DNA of 64,000 bases from Thalia democratica (Eukaryota): the NCBI GenBank assembly GCA_965202585.1, contig OZ241826.1:28520001-28584000 (forward strand), in the 5' to 3' direction. Positions within the stretch are counted from its first letter, which is position 1. Each line of letters opens with the position of its first letter. The translations under genes were made by a program, and so were the position numbers. This document shows, piece by piece, positions 10,625 to 30,128 of the stretch. The notes under the pieces were generated by a model that was not told the DNA's origin, did no database searches, and worked only from the letters and a program-made list of their open reading frames with translations.

Positions 10625-11281
10625 ATGGATAAAAAAACAAATTACACTAATGACGCTTCCAAGTACAAGAAAGACGAGCTTAGTTCTAGTTTAGATGAAT
10701 ACAAGTTAATTAAAGACTTCTTTGATAGAGCAAGTTACGTTTCGTCTCGAATGCCATCAAGCTTTAGAGTCTACAAGATAACAGAAAATCATCCAACAAA
10801 AGTTTCAGAAGAAAAACGCAACAATTTAATGCTGTTTCACGGCACAAACAATGAAGGAGTAGAAGGAATATTGAAAGAAGGTTTCAAAAACTCTGAAAAA
10901 GGGTGGTTTGGAAAAGGAGTGTACATGACCGACAGTTCGACCGCGGCCCGCCTTTATTCTTTCGATCGAGAACACTTGAACACCAAATATGTGTTTGTCA
11001 ACGAAGTGCTCGGCTCAGAAAAGCTACAAACGTGCGATCACGGCGTTTATTGTGCAAAGCCCGATCGCGAGTACAAACCGTGTGAGGCGTTTAAAAAACA
11101 TTATTATAGAGCAAGTAAGCAACTTGCTGAAGACGACTATAAAGAAGATGATCTGGGAAGGAGGTACAGAAACGTACCACACAGTTTGGAGAGTAACGAG
11201 GACGAATATTTGGCGGATGAAAGTATAACTGTACCGAGATATTTGGTTGAAGTCGGTTTGATGGAGGATTGTTGGGTGTAA
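10625..11281 (+). CDS. Single-domain PARP-like (diphtheria-toxin-fold, H-Y-E) ADP-ribosyltransferase, 218 aa
   Basis: Motifs LFHGT, GWFGKGVYMT, NEDEY and PRYL in the correct order. In-frame stop upstream at 10613. The ORF is uninterrupted and richer in GC and CpG than its flanks. Confidence 0.85.
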   Translation: MDKKTNYTNDASKYKKDELSSSLDEYKLIKDFFDRASYVSSRMPSSFRVYKITENHPTKVSEEKRNNLMLFHGTNNEGVEGILKEGFKNSEKGWFGKGVYMTDSSTAARLYSFDREHLNTKYVFVNEVLGSEKLQTCDHGVYCAKPDREYKPCEAFKKHYYRASKQLAEDDYKEDDLGRRYRNVPHSLESNEDEYLADESITVPRYLVEVGLMEDCWV

Positions 11282-13824: not shown

Positions 13825-16800
13825 CCAATCGGCCTTGCCCGATTGTTAGATTGTTATTGCATTTAAAGCTCAGTTTGCAGTTTTAAAAGATCTACAATAT
13901 AAATTAAAATGGAGCGTTCAACTATAGAGACAACTGTTTCAAAAGCTGTTTTAAAATAATAAAACAATCTTAAAGAATTACTGCTAGGTTTACGCCATAC
14001 TCAAGTCAGTGAAATATAAGTACCTTATATACTTAGTTGAAACCTTTTTTGTCGGTTGTTTTTATCTAGTTAAAAAAATTTAAAAGTGTTTATAAAGTTT
14101 TTAGAAAAAATGGTGTTTGTTTTAGAAGTTTTAAGGAAAGCTAAAAAAATCGATTGAAATAGTTTTTTTTGAATGTTTTTATTTATAAAATTGATTATTC
14201 AAACAACTACATCTGCTAGGTTAGTTTAATTTTTTTAACCAAAAACAGTTATTGCCTATTGTAATTATACAAAAGTAATTATAATCGTGCTTCATTAAAC
14301 TTAAAGTTTTCTGAGAGTGGCAAAAATTGCTTGTTAAGTTTCAGATTAAAAAATATTTAATACTTTTCGAAAATAGCTGAATATAATTTAGAATTTACTT
14401 ATTTTCCCTTCCACAAACAGATAACTTAAAAAGAAGTACTGTACAAAATCAAGATTTAACCAATAAGAAACTTACCTTATTTAGGACAGATTTAGAAAAG
14501 TGTAAAAAATAATGAAAAGTGTGCATGAGAAAGAAAGTTCATAACAAATTAATTTAAACGTTTCAAAAATTTATTATTTTATATTTCAAACTCATTACAA
14601 AACCACAAGTTTTTTAAAACGTAAAGGTTGTAGAAATTACAACAAAAATAAGAATTACTCTTCATTCAAAACTTAATTAGGGTACTTTAAGTTTTTTACT
14701 TTAAAAGAAGTATTAACTGTTAATCATTAAATTAAAGATTAACGTACTTTTATTTTAAACTTCATTTGTTATATGTTCATACAGCTTAACTTTTGAAACT
14801 TTTAATTAAAAAATTGGTATTTAGTATGATATACTTCCCTAAAACAGTAAATAGAACCTAAGAAAACCTAAAACTTTTAAAAAAGTAATAAAAGTGTAAT
14901 GATAATTTTGTTTAATTTGTAGTTTAAACTTTGAAAACTGTAAATCTTAACAGCATCAGAGTAAAGATTAAATAATAAAAATCTCATACATGCTAAATAG
15001 TTATGAACTAAAGTAAAAAAATAATCAAACATTTCTACAGTTTATTTTTTTAAATTTTATAAGCTATAACAATAGTTAATTAAAAAAATCTAGACACAAA
15101 GTTGTTATATGTAAATTTAAGAAAACTGTTGTGTATTACTAATTTAAATTTACATTTAATTTTTAAAGATGTTTGAAAACTAACAACTGAAGTAGTGATA
15201 AATGAATATAAATACTTAATAGTAAAAAACAACTTTTGGTTTATTTTATTATTATGTTTCAACAACAATATTTTTGAAGTTTGAACAAAGTAAAGATTTA
15301 TCAATAATGCTAAGATACTTTGTATGCTATGTCTTTGTAAATATTCAAGTAGTTAAAGTTTGTGTATTATGTTTATTGTAGTTAGTTTCATTTAAAATTA
15401 AAACCTAGTATGTTTAACTTAACTAAACAAAACCTCTCATTAATACATGAAATAAACAACTGTACTGAAAAGTACTTTTTTGTTATTGAATTTTACAAGT
15501 TAGAGTAATAAGACTAGTTGTTTTATATAATTTAACTTACAGTAGACAATGTAAGATTTTGACTAAATATAATGTTTTTTGATTATTTTCAAAATAAAAA
15601 TTACTTAAAAAAACGTAAGTTTATTTGATTTTGTAATTTTGACCATAGATAGACTAAATAAATAACAATTTAAAGAACTAGTTATTGTTAAAAGTGAATG
15701 AAAAACAAAAAAGTTGTTGAATTTATTTGCTTAACAGTTATGATGTAAATAATTCTAGTCTTTGAAAACTACGTATATAAATAATTTTGAAAATTAGTCA
15801 ATTTAAAAAATGTCAACAATTTTGTTTATAAAAGAAGCAACATTGTTGTTCTGTGGCACTTTGTACACAACATTTTCATTTTTTATTGACTTAAGTAGGT
15901 TTTTTTTTGAACGACAAAATAGCTCTCAAAACATTAGGTTCTAAGACCTGGCGAACAAAAAACTTTTTGGCTACCGAGTCTTACACCGAGTTGTAAGAAA
16001 ACAAAATTTTAAGTTGCTTTGATTTTTAAGTTAACTATAAATCCTAAATAAAAGAAAATGCACAATCTTTTATGTTATTTAATGTAATGTATGCTCTGTT
16101 ATTTAAGTTATTAATAAAAGAATGTTTCGTCCCAAAATTTAAATACGTATCAAAGATTTAAAAAGTCATTGAGGTGACAAATGTTTTCATATAGCAAAAA
16201 GTTGTAGTTTTGTCACATGATATACTTAACTATATGTTAGAAAACCAAACAATAGTAAGTTTCTATTCAAAGCTTTTAAGTTGTAAAAGAGTGCACTAAT
16301 ATTTATAGTATTTAGTTAATAGTATAATAGTTTATTAATAATAAGTTTTTATATAATAAATTACTAGAAGTAAAGAACAGCAATTAACATTTCTTCGAAA
16401 AATTACAGAGCTAATCTTTATTCTAAAAATCTGGAGTAATCTTTAAATTTAAAAATTTTATCTTTAGAATAAAATACGTTAAAAATTTAATAATTTTTGC
16501 TCTAAAGTTAACATTACAACAGCTTATTACCAAAGTAGACCTCTATTTCAATTTTTTTTTCAACTTTAAAGCTTTTTTTAAAACTGTACTGTTAAAAGTT
16601 GGTTAATTCAACACACAAATAAGAGCTAATACAACTTTGAGCCTAACAAAGTAAGTAAATTTAAAGTTCTTTCAAAAAATCTATGTTTTTTAACATAAAA
16701 CGACTGCTGTGTATAAGTGAAAAACAAATTAATTCTTATACAATTTTTAAGACAAGCAAAAACTTATTTAAAAGCTTAAAGTAGTCTGTAAGGTAAAATT

Positions 16801-17869
16801 TTACAAGCTTGCTGTATTCAACACTGATCAGATAAACTAACGCTTCATTAAGACTTAAAAGAGTTAAACTTTTTCCCGCTATGCGCTCGGTTGAACTTCT
16901 TCACTTTGAAATTCAGAGCACTAGGCAAAAAATGCGTTGCGAGAACCCCAGGTGGTGGCCAATGCATTTTTTGATTAAACAGTCGGTTTCCCCCCAGCTG
17001 TGCCAGTTCTAATGTTCACGCGGCCCGTGAAGAAATATAGATGCAGCATTATTATAAAATTGCCTACACAGATCTATGACCACTATTAAAATATGCATTC
17101 GCACATTTTAATGTGTTCCCGCGTTGTTACATTTTACTACAGCCTCATAGACAACGGTATCTATCTCCGTCCATCCGTTTCCAGAGTCACTGTACACTAT
17201 CAAAAAAATATAACAATTTCCCATACTCGCGTCAGTGTTTCCGAGTTTGTTTGCGTCACCGTTCTTACAGGCGTGTATCCTCGTCAATGTTCTGTGTTTA
17301 ACATGTTATGGTTTAGCCAACGGAAGCAATGCGAGCACCACTCCTCATTTCAAAGCGTTGTTCACCCAACTGCTTTTCAACTGGAACGACTTTGACATTT
17401 GAAAAAGTTGTTGTTTGAATGTTAACTGCTTCTACCAAGATCTGCACTGACAAGACTCTTTCGCCCAAAGCATCTGCTCCCCGGCCCTCCTACTCTTCTG
17501 ATCTTTATAGTCTTGAAATCATTAAGGGCAGATTTTATGGCCACCGTCCTGCTGTCAAGATAAACCGACACCTTTTGTTGTCAACCGAAAAAAGTCTTCC
17601 GTTTCCTTACTTCCAAAAGTAAACAATTCAAAGTTTTTAAACAGTTTGAGATCGTTTCACCTGAAGGCCACTAGTCACTTGCTTTGCAGGTAAAACCGCT
17701 ACTGAGTGCCAGAAAGAAGAAAATTTTAAAAGAAACTAGTTGCTAGATTAAGGGTTCGAACACCTTTTAGTCAATGAACAAGATTTACTAGAAAAATTAT
17801 TTAGTGGCCCAGACTTAAACAATTCCTCTAAGGTCATTTAATTGAAAAAATTATACTTTAGAAGCTAAA

Positions 17870-18310
17870 ATAGTAATTATGCAAAACTGTAACCAACAAA
17901 AACACAATTGAAAATAAACACTATTTCCAGCTTGAAATCACCTTATTTTTTACAGGCTTTTGACATTTTTCAACTTGAATAAAAAACAGGTCGCAGGATA
18001 GAGTAAGATTCGACCCGCGGGGGCTTTATTTGCCACCCTAACGCTTGAATGCTCAACCTTACGCCCCAATTCGTTTTGATCAAATTCAACGTCAGAGTGG
18101 CTGTCTACTCTCTGCTTTCAATCCGTTCATGCATAGTCAACCACTTATTAAGTTTGAGTTCTCGCTCGACGCCTAGAACGCGGTGTGTGAATTCGGTCCG
18201 CGACGCTTTCACTACCCTTTGTTGTTTTTTAAAGCTGGTCTGCACATAAGATGTAATTTCTCAAAGTTGTGGTACCCCGTAAAAGACATTGTTCAGTAAA
18301 AATATTTTTA
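17870..18310 (-). pseudogene. Decayed coding-like segment within a GC/CpG-richer island (16860-18310)
   Basis: One minus frame reads LLNNVFYGVPQL*EITSYVQTSFKKQQRVVKASRTEFTHRVLGVERELKLNKWLTMHERIESRE*TATLTLNLIKTNWGV with isolated stops. No family recognised. Confidence 0.3.
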
Positions 18311-19299: not shown

Positions 19300-22200
19300 A
19301 TTGAAAACGTGGTTTTTGGAGAAACATTTTCGTCTTTTACAAAACTATCATAAAATATTTAAATTTCTGTTACTTCTGCACAACACAAACAAAAGCTCTA
19401 AAATTTTTAACTTTTTGCTTTTTAATTAATATTATAACGGTTTATGCACGAAAATGCAATCGCTTTACAAATTTTCAATATAAAAGAATTTAAGTATATT
19501 TGCAAAAAATGCAAAAGTTACGTATATCCGGAAATATGCAGTAATTTTTTCAATTTGTTCTTTTCTGGTATAACTCTTTGATATTTACTGAAACAAAATG
19601 AGATTGTTGGTAAAGTATATAAGATTAATGTTTTCAAAAAACAGTGAAGCATAAAACTTAAAATGCTGGGGCCGACTTTTCTTAAATAGATGACCATAAA
19701 AAGTTATAATCAAAATATGATGTAGTAAATAGATATGTAAAGAAAAATAAATAGTTTACACAAACTTGAGATGCTTTAAGCTCTACTCTCTATTGTAAAA
19801 TGTGCATGAAATGGACTTAAAAACCCATTTAAGAGCCTTAAATCAGCTAACCTTTGTTTTTTCAAAGAAATGTTCACAAGAAAATAACTTAAAGAAAAAC
19901 TATTAACAATATATAAAACCCATTTAAAGTTTGTTTTTGAAAGCTTAAAACATTTTTTATACAATTAACTAGTAAAAAGTAATTTACTAAAAGTTATAAC
20001 TAGGATGAATACTTATTTAAATATGGTCTACGAGAATTTTTTTTAGTACTTAACACATTGTATTCTTAAATTTTAAGTGCTTGACCCTTATTATATTTTA
20101 GTAAAACCATCTTTTTGAATATTAAAATACAAAAACATCGGTGCCTTTTGGCTGTATTTGACTAAGTTTTTATATAATTGTCACAAAACTGTGTTTTGTT
20201 TTTTTTTCGTAACATCACAATTAAAACCGCATAAATTTATAAACTTTTTTTTTTTTAATTAATTTCTTAACGGCTTGATAGCAGAGGAGCTATCCTTATA
20301 GAAAAGTTTTATTCCAAAATCAGTTATAAGCCTTTTATACAGTTGGGTATAAAAGTTTCTGAAGTCTATAAATATATTGCAAAAAAAACTATAATTATTT
20401 TAAATTAGATCTATGTTATTTGAAATAACAAAATAAAACTTTACTTGTCTTAAAAAAGACTATTGATTTCCGAGAGCTTTTTTTACAAATCTGCCTATAC
20501 TATCTTTTAATATGAATTTACTTAAAGCATAAAGCGCAGGTATTAAACCCTAATTACATTTTTCGTTATTTTTGATGAATGCTGAAATTAAAAAAAAAGG
20601 TGCTTTTAGAAAAATTGATCTTTTACAAAACTGTCATAAAGTATATTAATTCAATTTTTATTTTATTATTTAGTATGTTGTAAAAGTGCTATCCTTTATA
20701 AATTTTTGACTTATATATAATTTCTCAACCGCTTATGCGCAAAGGAGCTACATTTTTACAAAGTTTTACCAAAAAGTAATTGCAGTTTTTTTTTGTATCA
20801 CATACAAAAGTTGCTTAAGTCCGGAAATAAACACTGCTGAAATTTGTTTTCTTTTAATTAAAATCGGGGCTTAAAAAAACACAACGGCTACATGTTGCCA
20901 TATAAACAGGACTTATAACTCAAAAAAACCTGGCATAAAAATACTCTCACTGTTCTTTACACTTCATTTGACTTAAAATATTAATCAAGTACAGTTTTAA
21001 CTAAGTAAAGTATCAAGTAACTCCAACACCTCAAAAATTTTTACATAGTCTGAACACCTTATTGTTTACTGAACAAAAAAAAAAAAAAAACGTATAAAAT
21101 ATTTAGCCCTAGGAACTAGTGCACGAAGAACCTTTCGGTTATCGAAACGTACACCATTTGGGTACCTTTTAACGTCTTGTCCAGGACATATACTTTAATT
21201 TGTTTCGTAACCTGCTTATTAAGAACTATTAAACACTTTGTTAACTATATTTCTCTAATATTCTTAGTTGGCATGATCTTTTTGTTTTGTAGTTACAAAA
21301 AAAATGATACTAAAATGATTTTCAGATCCTCATAAGCATACACATTTCATGCCTAAAAACTGAAACTAACAAGTGTTTCTAAGAAGCACCTTTTTATTTT
21401 GTACTTCAGTATTCGAAATGATAATTTTATCTGAATCCCACCCGGGTAAAATAGTTAAAACTAAGAGTAAAGTATAGTAAAAAATTCAAAGAACAACATT
21501 CATTATTTGCTTTTTTGTATTCTTAAAGATAATAGAGTATTTGAAGTTGATTATAAATTAATACACCTATCATTTTGAATACTGAAATTAAAAAATAAAT
21601 CGGTGCCTTTTGGAAAATTTTTCTCAGTGTTTTACAAAACTGTCATAAGTTTATTTATTTGTTTTACTTTGACAAAATAGAAATAAAACCGCAAAACTAA
21701 GTATTTTTTGTATTTAATTAATTTCTCAACGGATTTTAAGCAGAGGAGCTATTTGTTTACAAAGCTTTAATCCAAAAGTTTTAATTATTTTATAAAAACT
21801 GCATAAGACCATAGTATGCTGCTTTTCAAAAAATTCAAAACGTGTTTAATACTTGTCATTAAAATGTAATCTAAATTTTTATTATTTGTCATTAATTATA
21901 AGAATTAAAACAATCTGTATGTTTTTTGGCTGTTTTAAACTGTTTTTTCTAGTTTACTGTTAAAATTAAAGTGTCTATAACTTTTATTAGAAATAAAAGC
22001 GCATACTATTTTGAATACTGAATTATGAAAAATAAGTGTTCATTTGAAACATTTCATCAGTCTTTTACAGAACTGACATAAGACGTATTCTTTTCGATTA
22101 CTTCCGCACAACACAAAAAAAGCGCTTAGATTTATAATTTTTTTTGTATTTACTTAATGATAAAATGGCTTACACGCATAGGAGCTATTCTTTTACAAAA

Positions 22201-24060
22201 TTTTTTATTCAAAATTAGTTTTAATACCTTTTTAAAAGTTGTAAGCAAAAATTGCTTAAGTCTAGGAGCACGTTGTAGATAAATGTTTTGTGGTTTGCTT
22301 TAAACAACATAATGAAACTACATTTTTATAAACAAGAGTATTGATTGGAGAGAGTTTTATACTAAACTATTTATATTTTCTTAAAACTTTACTTAAATCA
22401 TAAAGCACACTTATTTGACAATGATAATATGTTTTATTCATTTTCTGAATAGTGAAATTACATAACAATCGGTGCTTTTGTAAAAACATAATTTTAACAA
22501 AACTGTCATAAAACTTTTTTATTTCGTGTTTTATTATCTAAAAAACAAATTAAAACCGCGCTACTTAACAACTTTTTGGTTTTTAATTATATCTCAACGG
22601 CTTATGAGCAGAGGAGCTATCTTTTTACAACATTTTAGTCGAAAACTAGTTTTAATACTTTTGAAAGTTCCTTGAGCCCTGAAAAAGGTGGTTAGTTTGT
22701 ATAAGAATTTGAATTTATACCAACTTTAAATTTATAAAGAAGTATTTGTTATTTTACAAGAGAATATTAGTTTTAATGGGAAAAAACTTGCTTAACTGAA
22801 TTCAATATTTAAATAAGATTATCATTATTAATCTTAATAAGTAACTAATAATTAACTAATCATTAATTATTAACAATTATTATAAGCATAAAAAATTTCT
22901 ATAACTGCATGGCATTTTCAACAACAGTAATGTTATAAATACTTAACTTGGTTTAATTGTATTCAATGTATAAAGTAGATTATCATTAATAATCTTAATA
23001 AGTAATTATTGTTAATAGTTGATGAATAGTTACTAGTTTGTTACTTATTAAGATTATTTTTGATAATCTAATTGAAACATTGAATACAGTTAAACCAAGT
23101 TAAGTATTAACAATGTTACTATTGTTGAAAATACCATACAGGCATAGAAGTTTTTTAAGCTACCAAACGCATCCTACTAAATTTTTCTAAAAATGCCTAA
23201 CTTCAAACTTAGACATTAGAAATAACAGTTTATTAGAATATAATAAGAGTAGAATAGTTACAATTTAAAATATACAAAAATTAACTTAAAGCTTTAAACT
23301 ATAACCGTTAATTCTTAAAGTACTTGAAATATTAGACCCTGATTATACCTTAGCATAAATAACGTTGTGAACATTGAAATATTAAAAATTGGTAATTTTT
23401 AGAACTATTTACTTGGTCTTTCACAAAACTATCATAAACTGTATTTATTTATTTTATTTCTGCACAACACAGACAAAAGCGCATAACTTTATAAATATTT
23501 CTTTTTTAATTATAGTTACATCAGCTTAGCGCTTAGGAGCTATACTTTTACAAAACTTTAATCTCAAACTAGTTTTAACTAGTTTTATAAAGTTGCTTAC
23601 AAAAGTTGCTCAAGCTAAAAGTATGTTGCACATAAGTTATTTAATTCATTTCAAATTTAGGATATTTCAATTAAAATAATGACAATATTGTTGTAATAAA
23701 TAGGACTATTGATTTCAAAGAGTTTTTATACAAAACTAGTTTTTCTAATTAAGACTTATCTAAAAAAATATTTACAACTGCTTAACCCTGATTATGTTTT
23801 TTATTATACTATCCTGAATACTGAAATTAAAAAAAAAGGTGCTTTTGGAGAAGTGAATTGTCTTTTACAAAACTGTCATAAATACTTTAATTTTTTTTTA
23901 TTTTTGCACAAGTTAAATAAAACCGCTTCACTTTATAAACTTTTTTTTAAAATTAATATTTTAACGGCTTAAGCACAAAGGAGCTATCTTTTTACAAAAA
24001 TTTAGTCTTAAAGTAATTTTGATATACTTTGAAACTGCATACAAATTTGCTTATGTCTGG
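19300..24060 (+). repeat. Array of at least 8 diverged ~430-460-bp units with conserved codon structure
   Basis: Recurring ACAAAACTGTCATAAA and GGAGCTA motifs (GGAGCTA near 20286, 20744, 21745, 22181, 22613, 23536, 23980). Spacings are 431-458 bp, or about twice that where insertions lie. Confidence 0.85.
22885..23161. repeat. ~277-bp palindrome (arms ~120 bp, loop 35 bp) inserted in the array
   Basis: 22885-23005 aligns without gaps to the reverse complement of 23041-23161, with 17 mismatches counted by eye. Confidence 0.85.
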
Positions 24061-24746
24061 AAACACTTGACAACTTATCTTTTTGGTTTAGTTTTAAGCT
24101 ATTTTCAAGTCGACACGATTTTTTTCAAGCAACTTTTTAAATTAGTTACCATCTACTCAATAAAGTTTATTAAACCAAACTTATATAATTAATACTGCTT
24201 TGTAAGTTTTACAAAACACCAAGTTTTAAATGCAGCTATTTGGTTGATTCATAGACTGTTAATGGTTTAAACACTTAATCTACTAGTATTAAAATTTTGA
24301 ATAAAGATACAACAATTCAAAATTAAAAAAAAATTTTTTAACATTTTAAACTTTAAGTATTAAAACATTTTTATAATAAACCTTTGGTGAATTTCGTAGT
24401 AGAAAGTCTTTAATCTAAGTTAAAATCATTTTCTTATTTTACAAAAACATTAAACCAGACATCATAAAATAAAAATTTTATCACATAAACTTAATATGTT
24501 TAATCAACAAAAACTTGTAGCATGCGTAAGTTAATAAACACTAATTTATTCTATTTACTTTCTTCCAGAAGTGATGTATTCTTTTCAACTAGATCCAGAA
24601 GAACCTTTATTCGAAAAATCTATTGAAAAAAAAATTTCTCCAAATTTCCATTATGATTAATGTTTTAGCAAACTAAAGTTCAAAATGCGTAAAATCTCAT
24701 TCATAAACAAAAAACAAGCATACCTTACAAATATTCCGAGTTGTTA

Positions 24747-24869
24747 CTAACTAGGTGGATAAATTAAACTCAAGCAGTGACCATATCGAAGGCATCTTTT
24801 TATGATTTCCTGGGGCAAGAGGAACCTGTCATTTGTTTTGAACCTTCTCCTTTTGTTCATCAACCAATT
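24747..24869 (-). CDS. Homeobox gene exon 7: homeodomain recognition helix and C-terminus
   Basis: Acceptor ttttgttacag then NWLMNKRRRFKTNDRFLLPQEIIKRCLRYGHCLSLIYPPS*. W48, N51 and R53 are present. Confidence 0.8.
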   Translation of the reverse strand, partial: NWLMNKRRRFKTNDRFLLPQEIIKRCLRYGHCLSLIYPPS

Positions 24870-27800
24870 CTGTAACAAAAAAGTTTATTATTTATAATTT
24901 AAAAACAGTTAAGTTAAAAGAATAAACTTTGAATTATTTATGTTTCTGAATTGTTCTATGTAGTAGCTTTTACCTCTATGATGGATGTATCCAAAATACC
25001 CAGTGCTCTGGCCAGCAACTTTTTGTCCTGTTTTCTCCACACGTTCAAGTTGTAGCAGTAAAGATACGAGTGAAGAACGAGCAACTGCCACTTTTGAAAC
25101 TCGTACTTTTTCTTTCTGTTATGATAACCATTTAGTTTTCTTTTCTACAATTACAATTCCTACATAAGAAACAGTTTTTAAATTTATATAAAAAATGCTG
25201 CTTAATCTGTCTTTGGTTATTGTAAGAGCTAATTAAAGTTTAAAACGATTTTCTTGTAAGTTTATTTCTCATTATAAAATTTTTGATTAAGTAATAATTA
25301 GTATATATAAATCTTTAAGACCTAATAAAAACACCTGAACTTGAGTTATAATATCTTACCCTCTACGAGCCTTTTTGAATTTTCTTCGTTCTTCTGTTGT
25401 ATCCTCGTTTTCACTGGTAAAGTCTTGTGGTGATTCTTGTTGGCTACAAGTTGAATCTTGTGGTGATTGTTGCTGGCTATAGACTGAATCTGGTGGTGAT
25501 TGCTGTTGCCTATAAGTTGGATCTTGTGGTGATTGCTGTTGTCCATAGGTTGGATCTTGTGGTGATTGCTGTTGTCCATAGGTTGGATCTTGTAGTGATT
25601 GTTGTTGTCTATGAGTTGAGTCTTGTAGTGATTTTTGTTTCCCATATGTTAAAATATGTGGTGATTGTTGTTGCCCATATGTTGGATCTTGTGGTGATGT
25701 TCGTTTCCCATAGGTTGAATCTTGTGGTGATTGCTGTTGTCCATAGGTTGGATCTTGTAGTGATTGTTGTTGTCTATGAGTTGAGTCTTGTAGTGATTTT
25801 TGTTTCCCATATGTTAGAATATGTGGTGATTGTTGTTGCCCATATGTTGGATCTTGTTGTGATGTTCGTTTCCCATAGGTTGAATCTTGTGGTGATTGCT
25901 GTTGCCCATATATAATGACTTGTGGTGATTGTTGTTGTCCATAAGTTGAGTCTTGTAGTGATTTTTGTTGCTCATATGTTAGAAAATGTGGTGATTGCTG
26001 TTGCCCATAAGTAGAATCTTGTGGTGTTTTTTGTTGCCCATAAGTTGGATCCTGTGGTGATTGCTGTTGCCCATAGGTCAATTCTTGTGGTGGTTTTTGA
26101 TGCCCATATGTTGGATCCTGTGGTGATTTTTGTTGCCTACAAGTTGGATCTATTGGTGTTTTCTGTTGCCCATAGTTTGAATCTTGTGGTGATTGTTGTT
26201 GTCCATAGGCTAGATTTTGTGGTGGTTGCTGTTGCCCATAGGAAGGTTCTTGTAGTGTTTTCTGTTGCCCATTAGTTGTATCTTGTGGTGATTGTTGTTG
26301 TACTTGTGGTGATTGTTTTTGTCCAAAGGTCAAGTTTAGTTGTATTTGGTGGTTTTGTTCATTGGTTAGTTGATCTGTATAGTTCAGTGTTTGTTGTACA
26401 CTACTACCTACCTGGGCCATCTGATCTAAACTTTCACTGCGCAACATTTCAGATAGTTCATTAAGAAAACTGCAGTTAGTCGAGTTGGAAATTTGGTTAA
26501 TATGTGCCATTTCATCATCACAGCACCTGTTTTCAAATGGCCGTTGTCCACTGGGCAGTGCTTGTTCTGATCTCTGATTTCCACTAAACTGTAACTGTGA
26601 TGTTATATGCTGTCCACATGAAATTGCATTTTCCGTCTCATTCGGTGTTTTTTGTGCACGATGTTCTGTTTCACTCTCATCAAGTTTACAATTAGACAGA
26701 AAGTCTGCGCATTCAGTCAATTCTTTAGCGGTATGTGCGTCCTTTTTTCCATAGATTAAAGCTTTTTCTGTCTCGTTCGATGTTTGTTTTCTCTTGTTTT
26801 CTTCCGGTTTTGACTCGTCAAATGTTTCACAGCTTTTCATTCCAGTTTTTTCACTATCAAGTGTGAAGTGTGCCACCCAAGACAGTTCGTTAAATTTTCT
26901 GCAGCTACTCACTTCAGCTTGTTTGTTAGAATCTTTATGGTTTTTAATCTGAAATGTCTCAATAAAACTACTAACGTTTTGAAATTTTGCACTTTCTGTC
27001 AATTGTGCGGTCATATGAATACTTTCCTGTACAATGGGCAGGGCTTGTTTTGATTTTTCATGTTTACTGGTTATTTCTTGTTCTATATGGTTTGGTATTT
27101 GTCGTTTAAGGTCAAAGTCAAAATCTTCAACACTACATTTTTTTAAAATGCTTGCATTCTCTGTAAGCGCAGTCGTATTATCATGTTTCTGTCCGTAGGC
27201 AAGGTTTTGTCGTGTCTCGTTCGATATTTCTGGTCCATGATTTGCTACCTGGGCTATACTGTCTAAATTTTCATCGTACAACATTTCAGACAGTTCACTA
27301 AAAAGACTAAAATTAGTCAAGTTAGACATTTGGTTTACAACTGTGGAACTATTCATCTGAAACGGTTGGTTAAAATCACCACAATTGGCCATTTGACTCG
27401 GTTCATTCAGTTGTCGACTGTTTGTTGAGCTGCATCGGCTGTTAAAATTCATATGGGTTGTTTTTTGAGTTGATCTAGTAGAATCTCTATTGCTTGTCGA
27501 TGTAATCGGGTTACTAAAATCCCCACAGATTATCTTGTTAGCCGGTTCGTTAAAGTATTCCCACGTCACCGCCTCAGTCGGTTGGTTAGAATCTTTAGAT
27601 TTTTCTTTGGAACGCCTACGTTTTAGAACTTTAGACGGCTCTTTAGAATTTTCCGTTTCGTATAAGTGTTTGAAACTTCCGTAGGTGTCCCTCTGGTCGA
27701 GCTCGTCAAAATTGCTGCAGTTTTCCTTGTCCGCACTCAGGTTTACCTTCACAAACTTCTCGGCATCCTAAAGTTTGTTCATGAGTTTTGTATATTAATT

Positions 27801-30128
27801 TTATTAGTAGTTACTTGTGCCATAGAGTTGTTGTGTATTCTAAACTTACGTGATCAATTAAGTAGTTTTTTTTTAACTTTTGTTTAACTAATTTAATCTG
27901 TTTAACTGTTTATGTAATTTATACACCATAAGTAAACCTTTTTTATTAGATTTATTTGTTTATGAATACAATTATAACTAAATATATGAATTTACACAAA
28001 TTGTACGTTTATTTTATTCATATTATTATAATATTATTCATCTTATAATAGTTTTTGCTAAAGTGAGTTTTGAAGATGGCCATGTATGTTTATTAAAATA
28101 ATTTTACCATTTTACTTTTTATTATTTATCATTATTTTTATCATTATAATTTATCATTATTTTACAAAGAATTTCACTTTTAAACTGACCTCATACACGA
28201 CTCTCCACTCCCCAGGAATAAATTCTTTTCCCAAATATTCCACGTAAACTTCGTACGGTGCTGTTAATTATTAAAAAATTAAAAACCTATAAAAAAAGAG
28301 GTTTTACATAAAATTATTTTATTAGTTTTTTATGTTTAATAAAGAAATTTTTAAACTGTTGGAGTTTCCTTGTAAAAATAAAAAAAAAGGTTATAAAAGG
28401 TTATTGTTTATAACATATGCAAAAGTATCCTAAGTAAAACACAACAAAGTTTATGTCAGTCGTGCTACTTACTTTTTTCTAAGTGGAAAATATGAAAAAT
28501 TAAGTAGTTTAATAATTTTATTGCAACACTGCAAAGGCTAAAAAGCAAAATGAGCTGGTGTATTTTATTAACCTTCTTTGGTTTGTCATACAGAATGCAC
28601 TTACTTAAATTTTTACAAAACTGTCATAAGTAAAATAAAACAAAGTTGTCATAAGTTTTTTTTAGTTTACTTTTTTTTGTCAAAGTAAAAAAAAATATCA
28701 AAAACTGTTATTCAATGAATTTTTATCAACACATATGCAGCTTAAAAGTAGGGGAGGTGTTATTTTTCAGGTAATTTTTAGTATAACACTTAAAAGTTCA
28801 TAATCTTTTCAAAATTTACATAACTGTCATAAATAGAACAACAAAAGTGTCTTAAGTTTTATTATTTTTAATTATTATACTCAGTGTTGAAAAAATTCAG
28901 AACTGTTATATTCATTTAATTTCACTTATACTACAGCGGATTAAACAAAACGGAGCTATAAAATTTCAGAATACATGAAGCTATAAAGTTTAAATTAGCT
29001 TAAAAATTTACAAAACTGTCCTAAATTAACAAAACTTCTTTTTCGCAAAATATTTTAGTTTAAAACTTAAATGAAATTAAAAACATGGAAAAATTAAAAA
29101 GTTTTGTTGGTGCTTAGTAATATAGAAGCTGCGGAGCTATAGTTTTACTTTTTAATTGCTAAAATTGCTGAAAATTCTTTGAAAATTGAATATTATTAAA
29201 ACTGTTGCAATAAATATCTAAAGATGTAAAATTTAAAAGCCCAGAAGTAATAAAATTTTTGTTTTTAAATTAATTACAAATTTTATATACTTAAAAGGTG
29301 TAAGAACAAGAATCACTACACTGATTTTTTCTTTTAGTAACTATTTTTTTTTTTAAACATGCTAAAACTTATTCAAAAAACTTAAATTAAAACACATACC
29401 TAAGGTAGCTATCAACGGGTAGTAAACTGTCCAAAATCTTTCAGTACCGTGTCTGTTTTTGTCTGAAAAGTTAAAACTTATAAAAATATTGTCAAAAAAA
29501 ATATGCAAAAAACTCATAATTTAAAATCAAAAAAATTAATTTAGTATATAAACTTATATATTACAGCAAAATTTTAAACTAATAGATTTTATACTTATTA
29601 ACTTATTTCACTTTGAAGTAGAATGATCTTGCAATTATTTATTACTAAACAGTCATAACAGTTGTAACTTACATCTTTCAAAGTTGATTCTTGCGCAGTT
29701 GTCAAGATCAAAGTCTTTATCTGTGTAAATAAAAAACAATTAATAAACTTTCTAATACGTTTAATTTGATTAAAATATTTTTTGACTAAGAGTACTATTT
29801 ACTAAACCTGAAGTTTTTATACCTTTATACTGGCTATTTGATTAAAAATTACCAACAAACCAAAATAAAATTACTAAAATCGAGTGCTTATTTAAAATAA
29901 GTTGTTTTTTAAATCAAGAAAATAAAACTGTTACTATTGCTAATCAAAACTAGATTTAAAACTAAACATCTAGAAACATCTACTTACTATGAACATAAAG
30001 CACATAAAAACGTATTAGATCTTAAGTTATATACTTGTTTAACGTTTGCACTTTTATCTTATAACAAAACCTATATTAACAAATATTAATTAAAAAACAA
30101 TTAATTCAAAACCTTTCTCACAATCCAT
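24747..30128 (-). CDS. Multi-exon atypical homeobox gene, ~968 aa if a 1-nt frameshift is corrected; possibly a recent pseudogene
   Basis: Seven exons with GT-AG introns. Phases match at every junction except exon 5/6. The joined translation begins MDYKDFDLDNCARINFERYKNRHGTERFWTVYYPLIATLAPYEVYVEYLGKEFIPGEWRVVYEDAEKFVKV and ends with a homeodomain. Confidence 0.75.
24974..25159 (-). CDS. Homeobox gene exon 6: homeodomain helices 1-2 and start of helix 3
   Basis: Acceptor ttcttatgtag, donor GAG|gtaaaa. Reads RKKKYEFQKWQLLVLHSYLYCYNLNVWRKQDKKLLARALGILDTSIIE and joins exon 7 in phase 0 across a 104-nt intron. Confidence 0.8.
25360..27767 (-). CDS. Homeobox gene exon 5: large low-complexity/repeat exon (the 798-aa ORF of the track)
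   Basis: Acceptor aaactttag|GAT and donor AGAGG|gtaaga overlapping the apparent stop. 2408 nt open. Basic NLS-like stretches KRRRSK and RRKFKKARR. Confidence 0.85.
25419..26243 (-). repeat. Coding 33-nt tandem repeat, 25 copies of (T)YGQQQSPQD(P/S)
   Basis: Counted from the ORF translation (aa 504-778). It includes a near-exact 165-nt five-unit duplication (25584-25913). Confidence 0.95.
28190..28260 (-). CDS. Homeobox gene exon 4 (71 nt)
   Basis: Acceptor ataattaacag, donor GAG|gtcagt. Reads PYEVYVEYLGKEFIPGEWRVVYE with a phase-0 join to exon 5. Confidence 0.75.
28540..29150 (+). repeat. Further degenerate units of the 430-bp family, inside a homeobox-gene intron
   Basis: ACAAAACTGTCATAAG at ~28614, ACATAACTGTCATAAA at ~28818, ACAAAACTGTCCTAAA at ~29010; GGAGCTAT at ~28952 and ~29133. 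Confidence 0.6.
29400..29462 (-). CDS. Homeobox gene exon 3 (63 nt, phase 1-1)
   Basis: Acceptor ttttaacttttcag, donor TAG|gtatgt. Reads (Y)KNRHGTERFWTVYYPLIATL(A). Confidence 0.7.
29673..29720 (-). CDS. Homeobox gene exon 2 (48 nt, phase 1-1)
   Basis: Acceptor ttttttatttacacag, donor GAT|gtaagt. Reads KDFDLDNCARINFER. Confidence 0.7.
30122..30128 (-). CDS. Tentative coding part of homeobox gene exon 1 (ATG GAT T)
   Basis: ATGGATT|gtgaga gives the required phase 1. An alternative is ATG at 30178 with the weaker donor T|gtaaaa at 30141. Confidence 0.4.

Follow-up and report, generated by a model that had tools for sequence, protein, structure and literature searches.

A candidate seven-exon homeobox gene in Thalia democratica that joins a Tyr/Gln-rich tandem repeat to a PBX-nearest homeodomain

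Does a long open reading frame (ORF) on the minus strand of a 64,000-nucleotide stretch of the Thalia democratica genome (GenBank assembly GCA_965202585.1, contig OZ241826.1, positions 28,520,001 to 28,584,000; hereafter the window) form part of a spliced homeobox gene and, if so, to which homeodomain class does the gene belong? An initial annotation, made from the letters of the window, had proposed that this ORF of 798 amino acids is one exon of a gene at 24747-30128. In that proposal, four small exons precede the ORF, two exons encoding a homeodomain of no recognizable class follow it, and the large exon carries a region resembling the activation domains of FET proteins. The analysis reported here leads us to regard as rather probable a protein-coding gene of about 956 codons and seven exons on the minus strand, encoding a lineage-restricted transcription factor with a TALE-derived homeodomain nearest to that of PBX. 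Transcription of the locus, its exact 5' end, DNA binding by the homeodomain and an activation or condensate role for the repeat are features that we infer. Coordinates and splice signals of all features of the gene are collected in Table 1.

Exon structure and the homeodomain junction

Direct reading and scripts agree that the 798-amino-acid ORF (25356-27752) ends at a TAA that lies inside a splice donor, GG/GTAAGA, where the slash marks the end of the exon. The open stretch itself is longer than the ORF: 803 codons lie between an AG acceptor (exon start 27767) and this donor (exon end 25360), which leaves two bases of a split codon. The splice signals claimed on both sides of the ORF are therefore present. 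At the local composition (about 25% G+C), some 9% of random codons are stops, so that the 803-codon frame cannot be a product of chance.

The four upstream exons join the ORF in phase, as had been claimed. The complete seven-exon model has 956 codons, with one terminal stop and none internal, and all six of its predicted introns are of the GT-AG type. Base composition follows the same boundaries: the G+C content of the exons is 0.33-0.44 (0.39 for exon 5), versus 0.18-0.22 for the six predicted introns, in a window that has no runs of N and that varies between about 0.20 and 0.37 in 2-kb bins. Exon 2 (0.33) is flanked by introns of 0.18-0.21, exon 3 (0.40) and exon 4 (0.44) form local G+C peaks, and isolated G+C islands at 24951-25100 and 24751-24850 mark the homeodomain exons 6 and 7, respectively.

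The two downstream exons, once joined, do encode a homeodomain of 63 residues, but the acceptor first assigned to exon 6 is wrong. If the exon started at 25159, the donor at 25360 would lead into the reading ...ARRG-NCNCRKEN-stop, and this in-frame stop after nine codons rules the acceptor out. Among all AG dinucleotides between 25340 and 25060, only those giving exon starts at 25139 and 25115 stay open to the donor at 24974/24973.

Variation between haplotypes helps in choosing between these two starts. Variants were taken from the contigs of genomic sequencing runs; the second haplotype comes from one sample, and 307 substitutions and 19 indels lie outside the listed variants to which the counts below refer. 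Within the 24 nucleotides between 25115 and 25139, the second haplotype has substitutions at 25126 and 25128, and next to them, at 25140, it has a deletion of 1 nucleotide. Another run has a deletion at 25264, inside intron 5. In the 142 nucleotides of exon 6, only four substitutions separate the haplotypes. The segment 25116-25139 behaves like intron, and because of its two substitutions and the adjoining deletion we favour 25115 as the better acceptor. The start at 25139 is disfavoured by the deletion at 25140 and by the density of variants in 25116-25139. The junction given in the initial annotation was thus off by 44 nucleotides (25159 versus 25115).

The same variants bear on whether the gene is functional. 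Across the coding sequence, the haplotypes differ at 28 listed positions, divided equally between 14 synonymous and 14 nonsynonymous changes and including no stops; eight of the listed variants sit in the tandem repeat, where errors of register are possible. With synonymous sites making up 20% of the coding sequence, the ratio of nonsynonymous to synonymous polymorphism per site (pN/pS) is about 0.25, and a binomial comparison with a neutral expectation of 20-30% synonymous changes gives p values from 0.0004 to 0.02. The four changes in exon 6 comprise three synonymous ones and a single replacement, L40S, which moves towards the canonical Ser/Thr at homeodomain position 40. All 12 listed indels fall in predicted introns, even though exons make up 49% of the compared stretch (chance about 3e-4), and none is inside exon 5. 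In a run that is labelled as another organism, the same second-haplotype variants are fixed. The 14/14 division, the lack of stops and the confinement of all listed indels to introns argue for a functional gene; there are signs of purifying selection between the haplotypes, and the gene looks intact and constrained.

Divergence between the haplotypes is itself high. They differ at 23 of 292 positions in 26292-26583 and at 28 of 299 in 27669-27967, a divergence of about 8-9% within one sample. In the run labelled as a different organism, the divergent haplotype is the sole one seen. Very high heterozygosity would account for this pattern, as would an old polymorphism that is shared.

Homeodomain identity and class

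The C terminus of the joined exons holds a 63-residue domain with a basic arm, R-R-G-K-K-K-Y-E-F, and a third helix that reads N47-W48-L49-M50-N51-K52-R53-R54-R55, where N47 follows ...I-I-E in the translation. In the joined translation, the homeodomain invariants W48, N51 and R53 and the core residue L16 are all present, and F49 is replaced by leucine. By direct count, 34 residues extend from L16 to W48 versus the usual 31. Direct reading in this way bore out each residue-level claim of the initial annotation, namely this spacing, N47, L49, M50 and the missing P-Y-P motif.

When the joined C terminus was compared with the sequences of the PDB by using phmmer, 25 chains were matched, and every one is a homeodomain. 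Extradenticle ranks first (E 3.8e-5), followed by PBX1 (8e-5 to 3e-3), TGIF1 (0.007), Lhx9 (0.15) and MEIS/PKNOX (about 1), so that the eight best matches are all Extradenticle or PBX1 chains (E 4e-5 to 3e-3). In the same search, the reversed sequence matched nothing but a GNAT protein (E 0.49), and a shuffled sequence matched nothing at all. Exon 6 alone and exon 7 alone gave no homeodomain match either. The signal therefore needs the phase-0 join, which lends indirect support to the intron 6 junction. As judged by these sequence statistics, the predicted homeodomain is genuine.

Structure prediction points in the same direction. A single-sequence AlphaFold2 (AF2) model of the domain places helices at query residues 2-34, 40-50 and 55-75, which are the positions expected for a homeodomain, with a predicted local distance difference test score (pLDDT) of 67. 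In a Foldseek search of the PDB with this model, Extradenticle and PBX occupy places 1 to 9 and are followed by TGIF and MEIS, with E values of at least 0.2 and template modelling scores of 0.4-0.64. Among Swiss-Prot models, PBX2 and PBX1 come first and IRX4 and MKX far lower, with weak E values.

These rankings do not sustain the earlier description of the homeodomain as unclassifiable, because PBX/Extradenticle proteins take the top places in both the sequence and the fold searches, with TGIF and MEIS behind them. We class the domain as an orphan that derives from TALE and is nearest to PBX, and not as a member of the PBC class (PBX1-4, Extradenticle and ceh-20). The traits held in common with that class are a length of 63 residues, N47, N-K-R at positions 51-53, A-R-R before the N-terminal arm and a location near the C terminus. 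Other animal TALE classes generally have N-A-R rather than the N-K-R of PBX at 51-53. PBC proteins give the best sequence and fold matches; identity to them is only about 30-39% over 49-76 aligned columns.

Several traits set the protein apart from the PBC class. Proteins of this class have PBC-A and PBC-B domains (PF03792), for which a hmmscan of the 798-amino-acid exon translation found no match at E values up to 1. The P-Y-P motif at TALE positions 24-26, which in PBC proteins forms the pocket for the Hox hexapeptide, is missing, and N-V-W is aligned in its place. F49 and G50 of the PBC class correspond to L49 and M50 here. The HMMER alignment to Extradenticle contains one gap in the loop and another in the turn between helices 2 and 3 (G-I-L-D-T-S versus G-I-T-V-S); the three extra residues may thus be arranged as two plus one, with a loop one residue shorter and a helix 2/3 turn one residue longer than in PBX.

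Intron position also differs. The phase-0 intron that had been claimed between homeodomain residues 46 and 47 can be read directly at 24973-24870, whereas the homeobox intron of human PBX1 is at 44/45 (PMC6219170, Table S2). That of MEIS and KNOX genes is at 48(2/3) (PMC6219170), and an intron at 46/47 is typical of many PRD-class genes (PMC2211742).

The mixture of class signatures noted in the initial annotation is real as far as the 46/47 intron, M50, L49 and the lack of P-Y-P are concerned, but a chimera of classes fits the domain less well than does a fast-evolving TALE derivative. Members of the ONECUT class combine a CUT domain with a homeodomain that has F48 and M50; here M50 is present, but position 48 is tryptophan and Pfam finds no CUT domain, and ONECUT membership was rejected.

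Alternative explanations

Several points weigh against the interpretation of the locus as a gene for a PBX-nearest homeodomain protein. With regard to splicing, the pyrimidine tract of the in-frame acceptor at 25115 is poor, and the acceptor that looks best (AG at 25161-25160) does not keep the frame. The donor of exon 1, AAG/GTTTTG, is weak; exon 1 is the weakest part of the model and may be wrong, and the gene could instead begin at a spliced-leader acceptor or with a different 5' exon. All four small 5' exons are putative and are defined by their splice signals, phase and G+C content. A search of sequencing runs for the locus matched three, all genomic and with no RNA run among them, and genomic contigs of these runs cross predicted introns (for example, 24719-25460 in one piece). 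The scope of the haplotype comparison, given above, belongs on the same side.

With regard to the domain, the initial annotation had proposed a check of the joined protein against homeodomain profiles, and the outcome was divided. The phmmer matches to PDB sequences are significant, but in the Pfam scan PF00046 (Homeobox) did not match, and Homeobox_KN (PF05920, the TALE-type model) matched at E 0.004 with 17.4 bits, under its gathering cut-off of 24. The AF2 model of the domain, computed from one sequence, offers modest confidence, and with all Foldseek E values at 0.2 or worse we treat the fold evidence as supportive, not decisive. Finally, L49 and M50 are unusual in a DNA-binding homeodomain.

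Two alternatives survive these considerations best, although each seems unlikely to us. According to the first, the large ORF is real but its translation does not extend to the homeodomain exons: the protein would stop after ...ARRG, through use of the 25161-25160 acceptor or through an earlier end of the transcript, and the homeodomain would be a relic in the 3' untranslated region or part of another transcript. That AG is preceded by the sole good pyrimidine tract, tgtttcttatgtag, its use leads to the stop after nine codons, and the runs found for the locus are genomic. The homeodomain exons nevertheless keep an open frame, elevated G+C content and phase-compatible junctions, and the changes between haplotypes in exon 6 are three synonymous against one nonsynonymous. 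Moreover, exon 5 ends in a basic ARRG that carries on the PBX-like N-terminal arm, the homeodomain frame has no methionine from which it could start separately, and direct reading finds a branch-like site, CTAAA, 16-19 nucleotides upstream of the 25115 acceptor.

The second alternative, of much the same low probability, accepts translation and holds that the domain is a pseudo-homeodomain, which has kept its fold and lost specific DNA binding and which now serves as a protein-interaction or nuclear-targeting module of a rapidly evolving disordered protein. The Pfam score below threshold would be in keeping with this idea, as would L49, M50, the loss of P-Y-P and the possible one-residue insertion in the helix 2/3 turn. 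Retention of W48, N51, R53 and R55 together with a strongly basic N-terminal arm speaks against this idea, however, and so does the mostly synonymous character of the exon 6 substitutions.

A third explanation, which we consider quite improbable, is a PRD-like origin in which secondary insertions produced the length of 63 residues and the resemblance to PBX is convergent. It draws on the phase-0 46/47 intron, typical of many PRD-class genes (PMC2211742) and distinct from the 44/45 intron of human PBX1 (PMC6219170), and on the gaps in the HMMER alignment by which the extension may be of the two-plus-one kind. Membership in the PRD class was rejected in spite of the fitting intron, given the 63 residues, against 60 in a PRD-type homeodomain, and the absence of any PRD-class chain from the 25 PDB sequence matches. 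In the Foldseek results, the ALX4, PRRX and DUX4 structures rank below all TALE hits, with probabilities of 0.3 or less, and N47, K52 and the A-R-R before the arm are TALE/PBX traits. That the locus is a decaying duplicate, open only by chance, is scarcely credible: the matched runs are genomic and no homologue turned up in any library searched, but 956 codons are open over seven exons in DNA in which a random codon has a chance of about 9% of being a stop, pN/pS stands at about 0.25, the second haplotype adds no stops, and every listed indel is intronic.

Repeat region, proposed role and surroundings

N-terminal to its homeodomain, the predicted protein would be largely disordered. The part of exon 5 outside the repeat amounts to 475 residues in which S, E, N, T and K are abundant, and within it two modules, A and B, represent an old internal duplication. 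They are 28% identical (BLASTP E 2.5e-11), have a common motif of the type CSxFxELSEML and contain a 123-nucleotide core that is 73% identical at the DNA level. A single-sequence AF2 model of exon-5 residues 1-480 has a mean pLDDT of 36 and no confident fold. The repeat region that follows is a young 33-bp tandem repeat, which encodes 27 in-register units of 11 residues with the consensus QSPQDxTYGQQ. Each unit carries an S-P site, and the region as a whole is composed of 29% Q, 12% S, 11% P, 9% T, 7% Y, 7% G and 6% D. A basic stretch separates the repeat from the homeodomain. Long ORFs at 25427-25915 (plus strand) and 25346-25645 (minus strand) are by-products of the 33-nucleotide periodicity and not genes.

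The YGQQ(Q)S motif of the repeat is also present in FUS. Like the FET proteins (FUS, EWSR1 and TAF15), the repeat region combines this motif with regularly spaced tyrosines in a Gln/Ser-rich context. It differs from them in that S, Y, G and Q together make up about 55% of it and that it contains 11% Pro, 6% Asp and 6% Lys plus Arg. FET family members moreover combine their SYGQ-rich domain with an RRM, RGG segments and a RanBP2 zinc finger, and a Pfam scan found no RRM, RGG or zinc finger here. Homology to FET proteins was rejected on these grounds, together with the lack of any FET match to the repeat region among PDB sequences and the strict 11-residue period imposed by the 33-bp repeat. Of the description FET-like, the motif and part of the composition therefore stand, and a sequence relationship does not; judged from the sequence, the resemblance is compositional and convergent. 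The repeat may plausibly act as a multivalent activation or condensate region. The order of parts, with a low-complexity segment N-terminal to a DNA-binding domain, is that of the EWS-FLI1-type and E2A-PBX1 fusions.

Searches for relatives suggest that the gene is apparently confined to one marine animal lineage. Word-seeded protein searches with exon-5 residues 1-500 and with the 99-residue C terminus found no match, and HMMER searches of 1.84 billion protein representatives with the C terminus gave 0 hits at E of 0.001 or less. An ESM Atlas feature search with a 47-residue exon returned only noise, a Pfam scan of the N-terminal exons gave nothing meaningful, and the 64-kb window contains no second copy of the gene. 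The lineage-specific gene envisaged by the initial annotation is consistent with this lack of relatives in very large protein libraries. A parallel exists in Spiralia, where lineage-specific expansions of non-canonical TALE genes (SPILE, or TALE-I to XIX) defy easy classification, frequently escape standard domain searches and form local groups of paralogs (PMC6118893). Those genes resemble the present one in that they encode fast-evolving TALE-type homeodomains restricted to one lineage. They belong to another phylum, and no long Tyr/Gln tandem repeat has been reported for them.

A spliced gene in which a Tyr/Gln-rich low-complexity region is fused to a C-terminal homeodomain of TALE length, as the initial annotation envisaged, agrees with all the tests made here. 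If the favoured interpretation is correct, the gene would encode a nuclear transcription factor of a lineage-restricted family. From the N to the C terminus, this protein would comprise a region encoded by the four small exons, about 480 disordered residues made up by the two modules, the 27 repeat units, the basic stretch and the C-terminal homeodomain of 63 residues. The homeodomain would be a fast-evolved TALE derivative, nearest to PBX/Extradenticle, from which the PBC domains, which tie PBX to MEIS, and the P-Y-P pocket, which ties it to Hox, had been lost. Helix 3, in which W48, N51 and R53 are retained beside the unusual M50, probably enables the domain to bind DNA on its own, and the likely role of the repeat region is that of a multivalent domain for activation or self-association.

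A bolder proposal, which we hold only tentatively and think rather doubtful, is that a thaliacean-specific gene family took up a PBX-type TALE homeodomain, dropped the MEIS and Hox interfaces and coupled the domain to an expandable Tyr/Gln repeat, thereby creating a natural counterpart of oncofusions such as EWS-FLI1 and E2A-PBX1. If true, this proposal could connect the gene with the unusual way in which salps develop. Lineage-specific, fast-evolving homeobox genes have repeatedly been tied to lineage-specific development, as with spiralian SPILE and eutherian PRD-like genes. In tunicates of this kind, embryogenesis is very divergent and hardly any regulators have been annotated, and the locus provides a concrete candidate: a TALE-derived homeodomain without the partner interfaces of PBX, attached to a repeat whose number of units can change by slippage.

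Table 1. Predicted features of the candidate homeobox gene, in window coordinates (slashes mark exon boundaries; TRF, Tandem Repeats Finder)
Feature	Position	Strand	Description
Putative exon 1	30113-30128	-	ATG at 30128-30126; 16 nt; ends in phase 1
Putative exon 2	29673-29720	-	48 nt; phase 1 to 1; acceptor ttatttacacag/, donor /gtaagt
Putative exon 3	29400-29462	-	63 nt; phase 1 to 1; acceptor aacttttcag/, donor /gtatgt
Putative exon 4	28190-28260	-	71 nt; phase 1 to 0; acceptor ataattaacag/, donor /gtcagt
Exon 5	25360-27767	-	2408 nt; 803 codons; acceptor to phase-2 donor
Module A (old internal duplication)	27162-27743	-	Exon-5 residues 9-202
Module B (old internal duplication)	26328-26927	-	Exon-5 residues 281-480
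Tandem repeat	25423-26300	-	33 nt x 26.6 copies (TRF and repeat search); higher order 165 nt x 5.3 at 26300-25423 (TRF)
Intron 5	25116-25359	-	244 nt; GT..AG; phase 2; splits homeodomain codon 2
Exon 6	24974-25115	-	142 nt; homeodomain residues 2-46 (N-terminal arm, helix 1, extended loop, helix 2, start of helix 3)
Intron 6	24870-24973	-	104 nt; GT..AG; phase 0; between homeodomain residues 46 and 47
Exon 7	24747-24869	-	Homeodomain residues 47-60, then a 26-residue tail; stop TAG at 24749-24747
AATAAA, possible polyadenylation signal	24606-24611	-	136 nt past the stop; weak evidence in DNA so rich in A+T

Elsewhere in the window, for which an Rfam scan of the whole length found no match, a few other features were seen. 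A single-exon ORF of 218 amino acids at 10625-11281 (plus strand) encodes a PARP catalytic domain (PF00644, E 5e-17) with motifs of the H-Y-E type; more weakly, this ORF also resembles ADP-ribosyltransferase families of polyvalent and toxin proteins. At 16800-18300 lies a patch with a G+C content of 0.43-0.46, versus a background of about 0.25; it contains no long ORF, and neither its best ORF (Pfam) nor its DNA (Rfam) gave a match. A degenerate interspersed or tandem repeat with the core GTCTTTTACAAAACTGTCATAA, spaced locally at about 440 nucleotides, occupies 19300-24020 and part of intron 3 (about 28400-29300). Copies of it take up the stretch immediately downstream of the gene and stand in reverse orientation in the 1139-nucleotide intron 3, and their abundance explains the high contig depth of these regions. 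Nested inverted repeats at 22792-23161, with 121-nucleotide arms that are 86% complementary and 35 nucleotides apart, are possibly a small foldback element or one resembling a miniature inverted-repeat transposable element.

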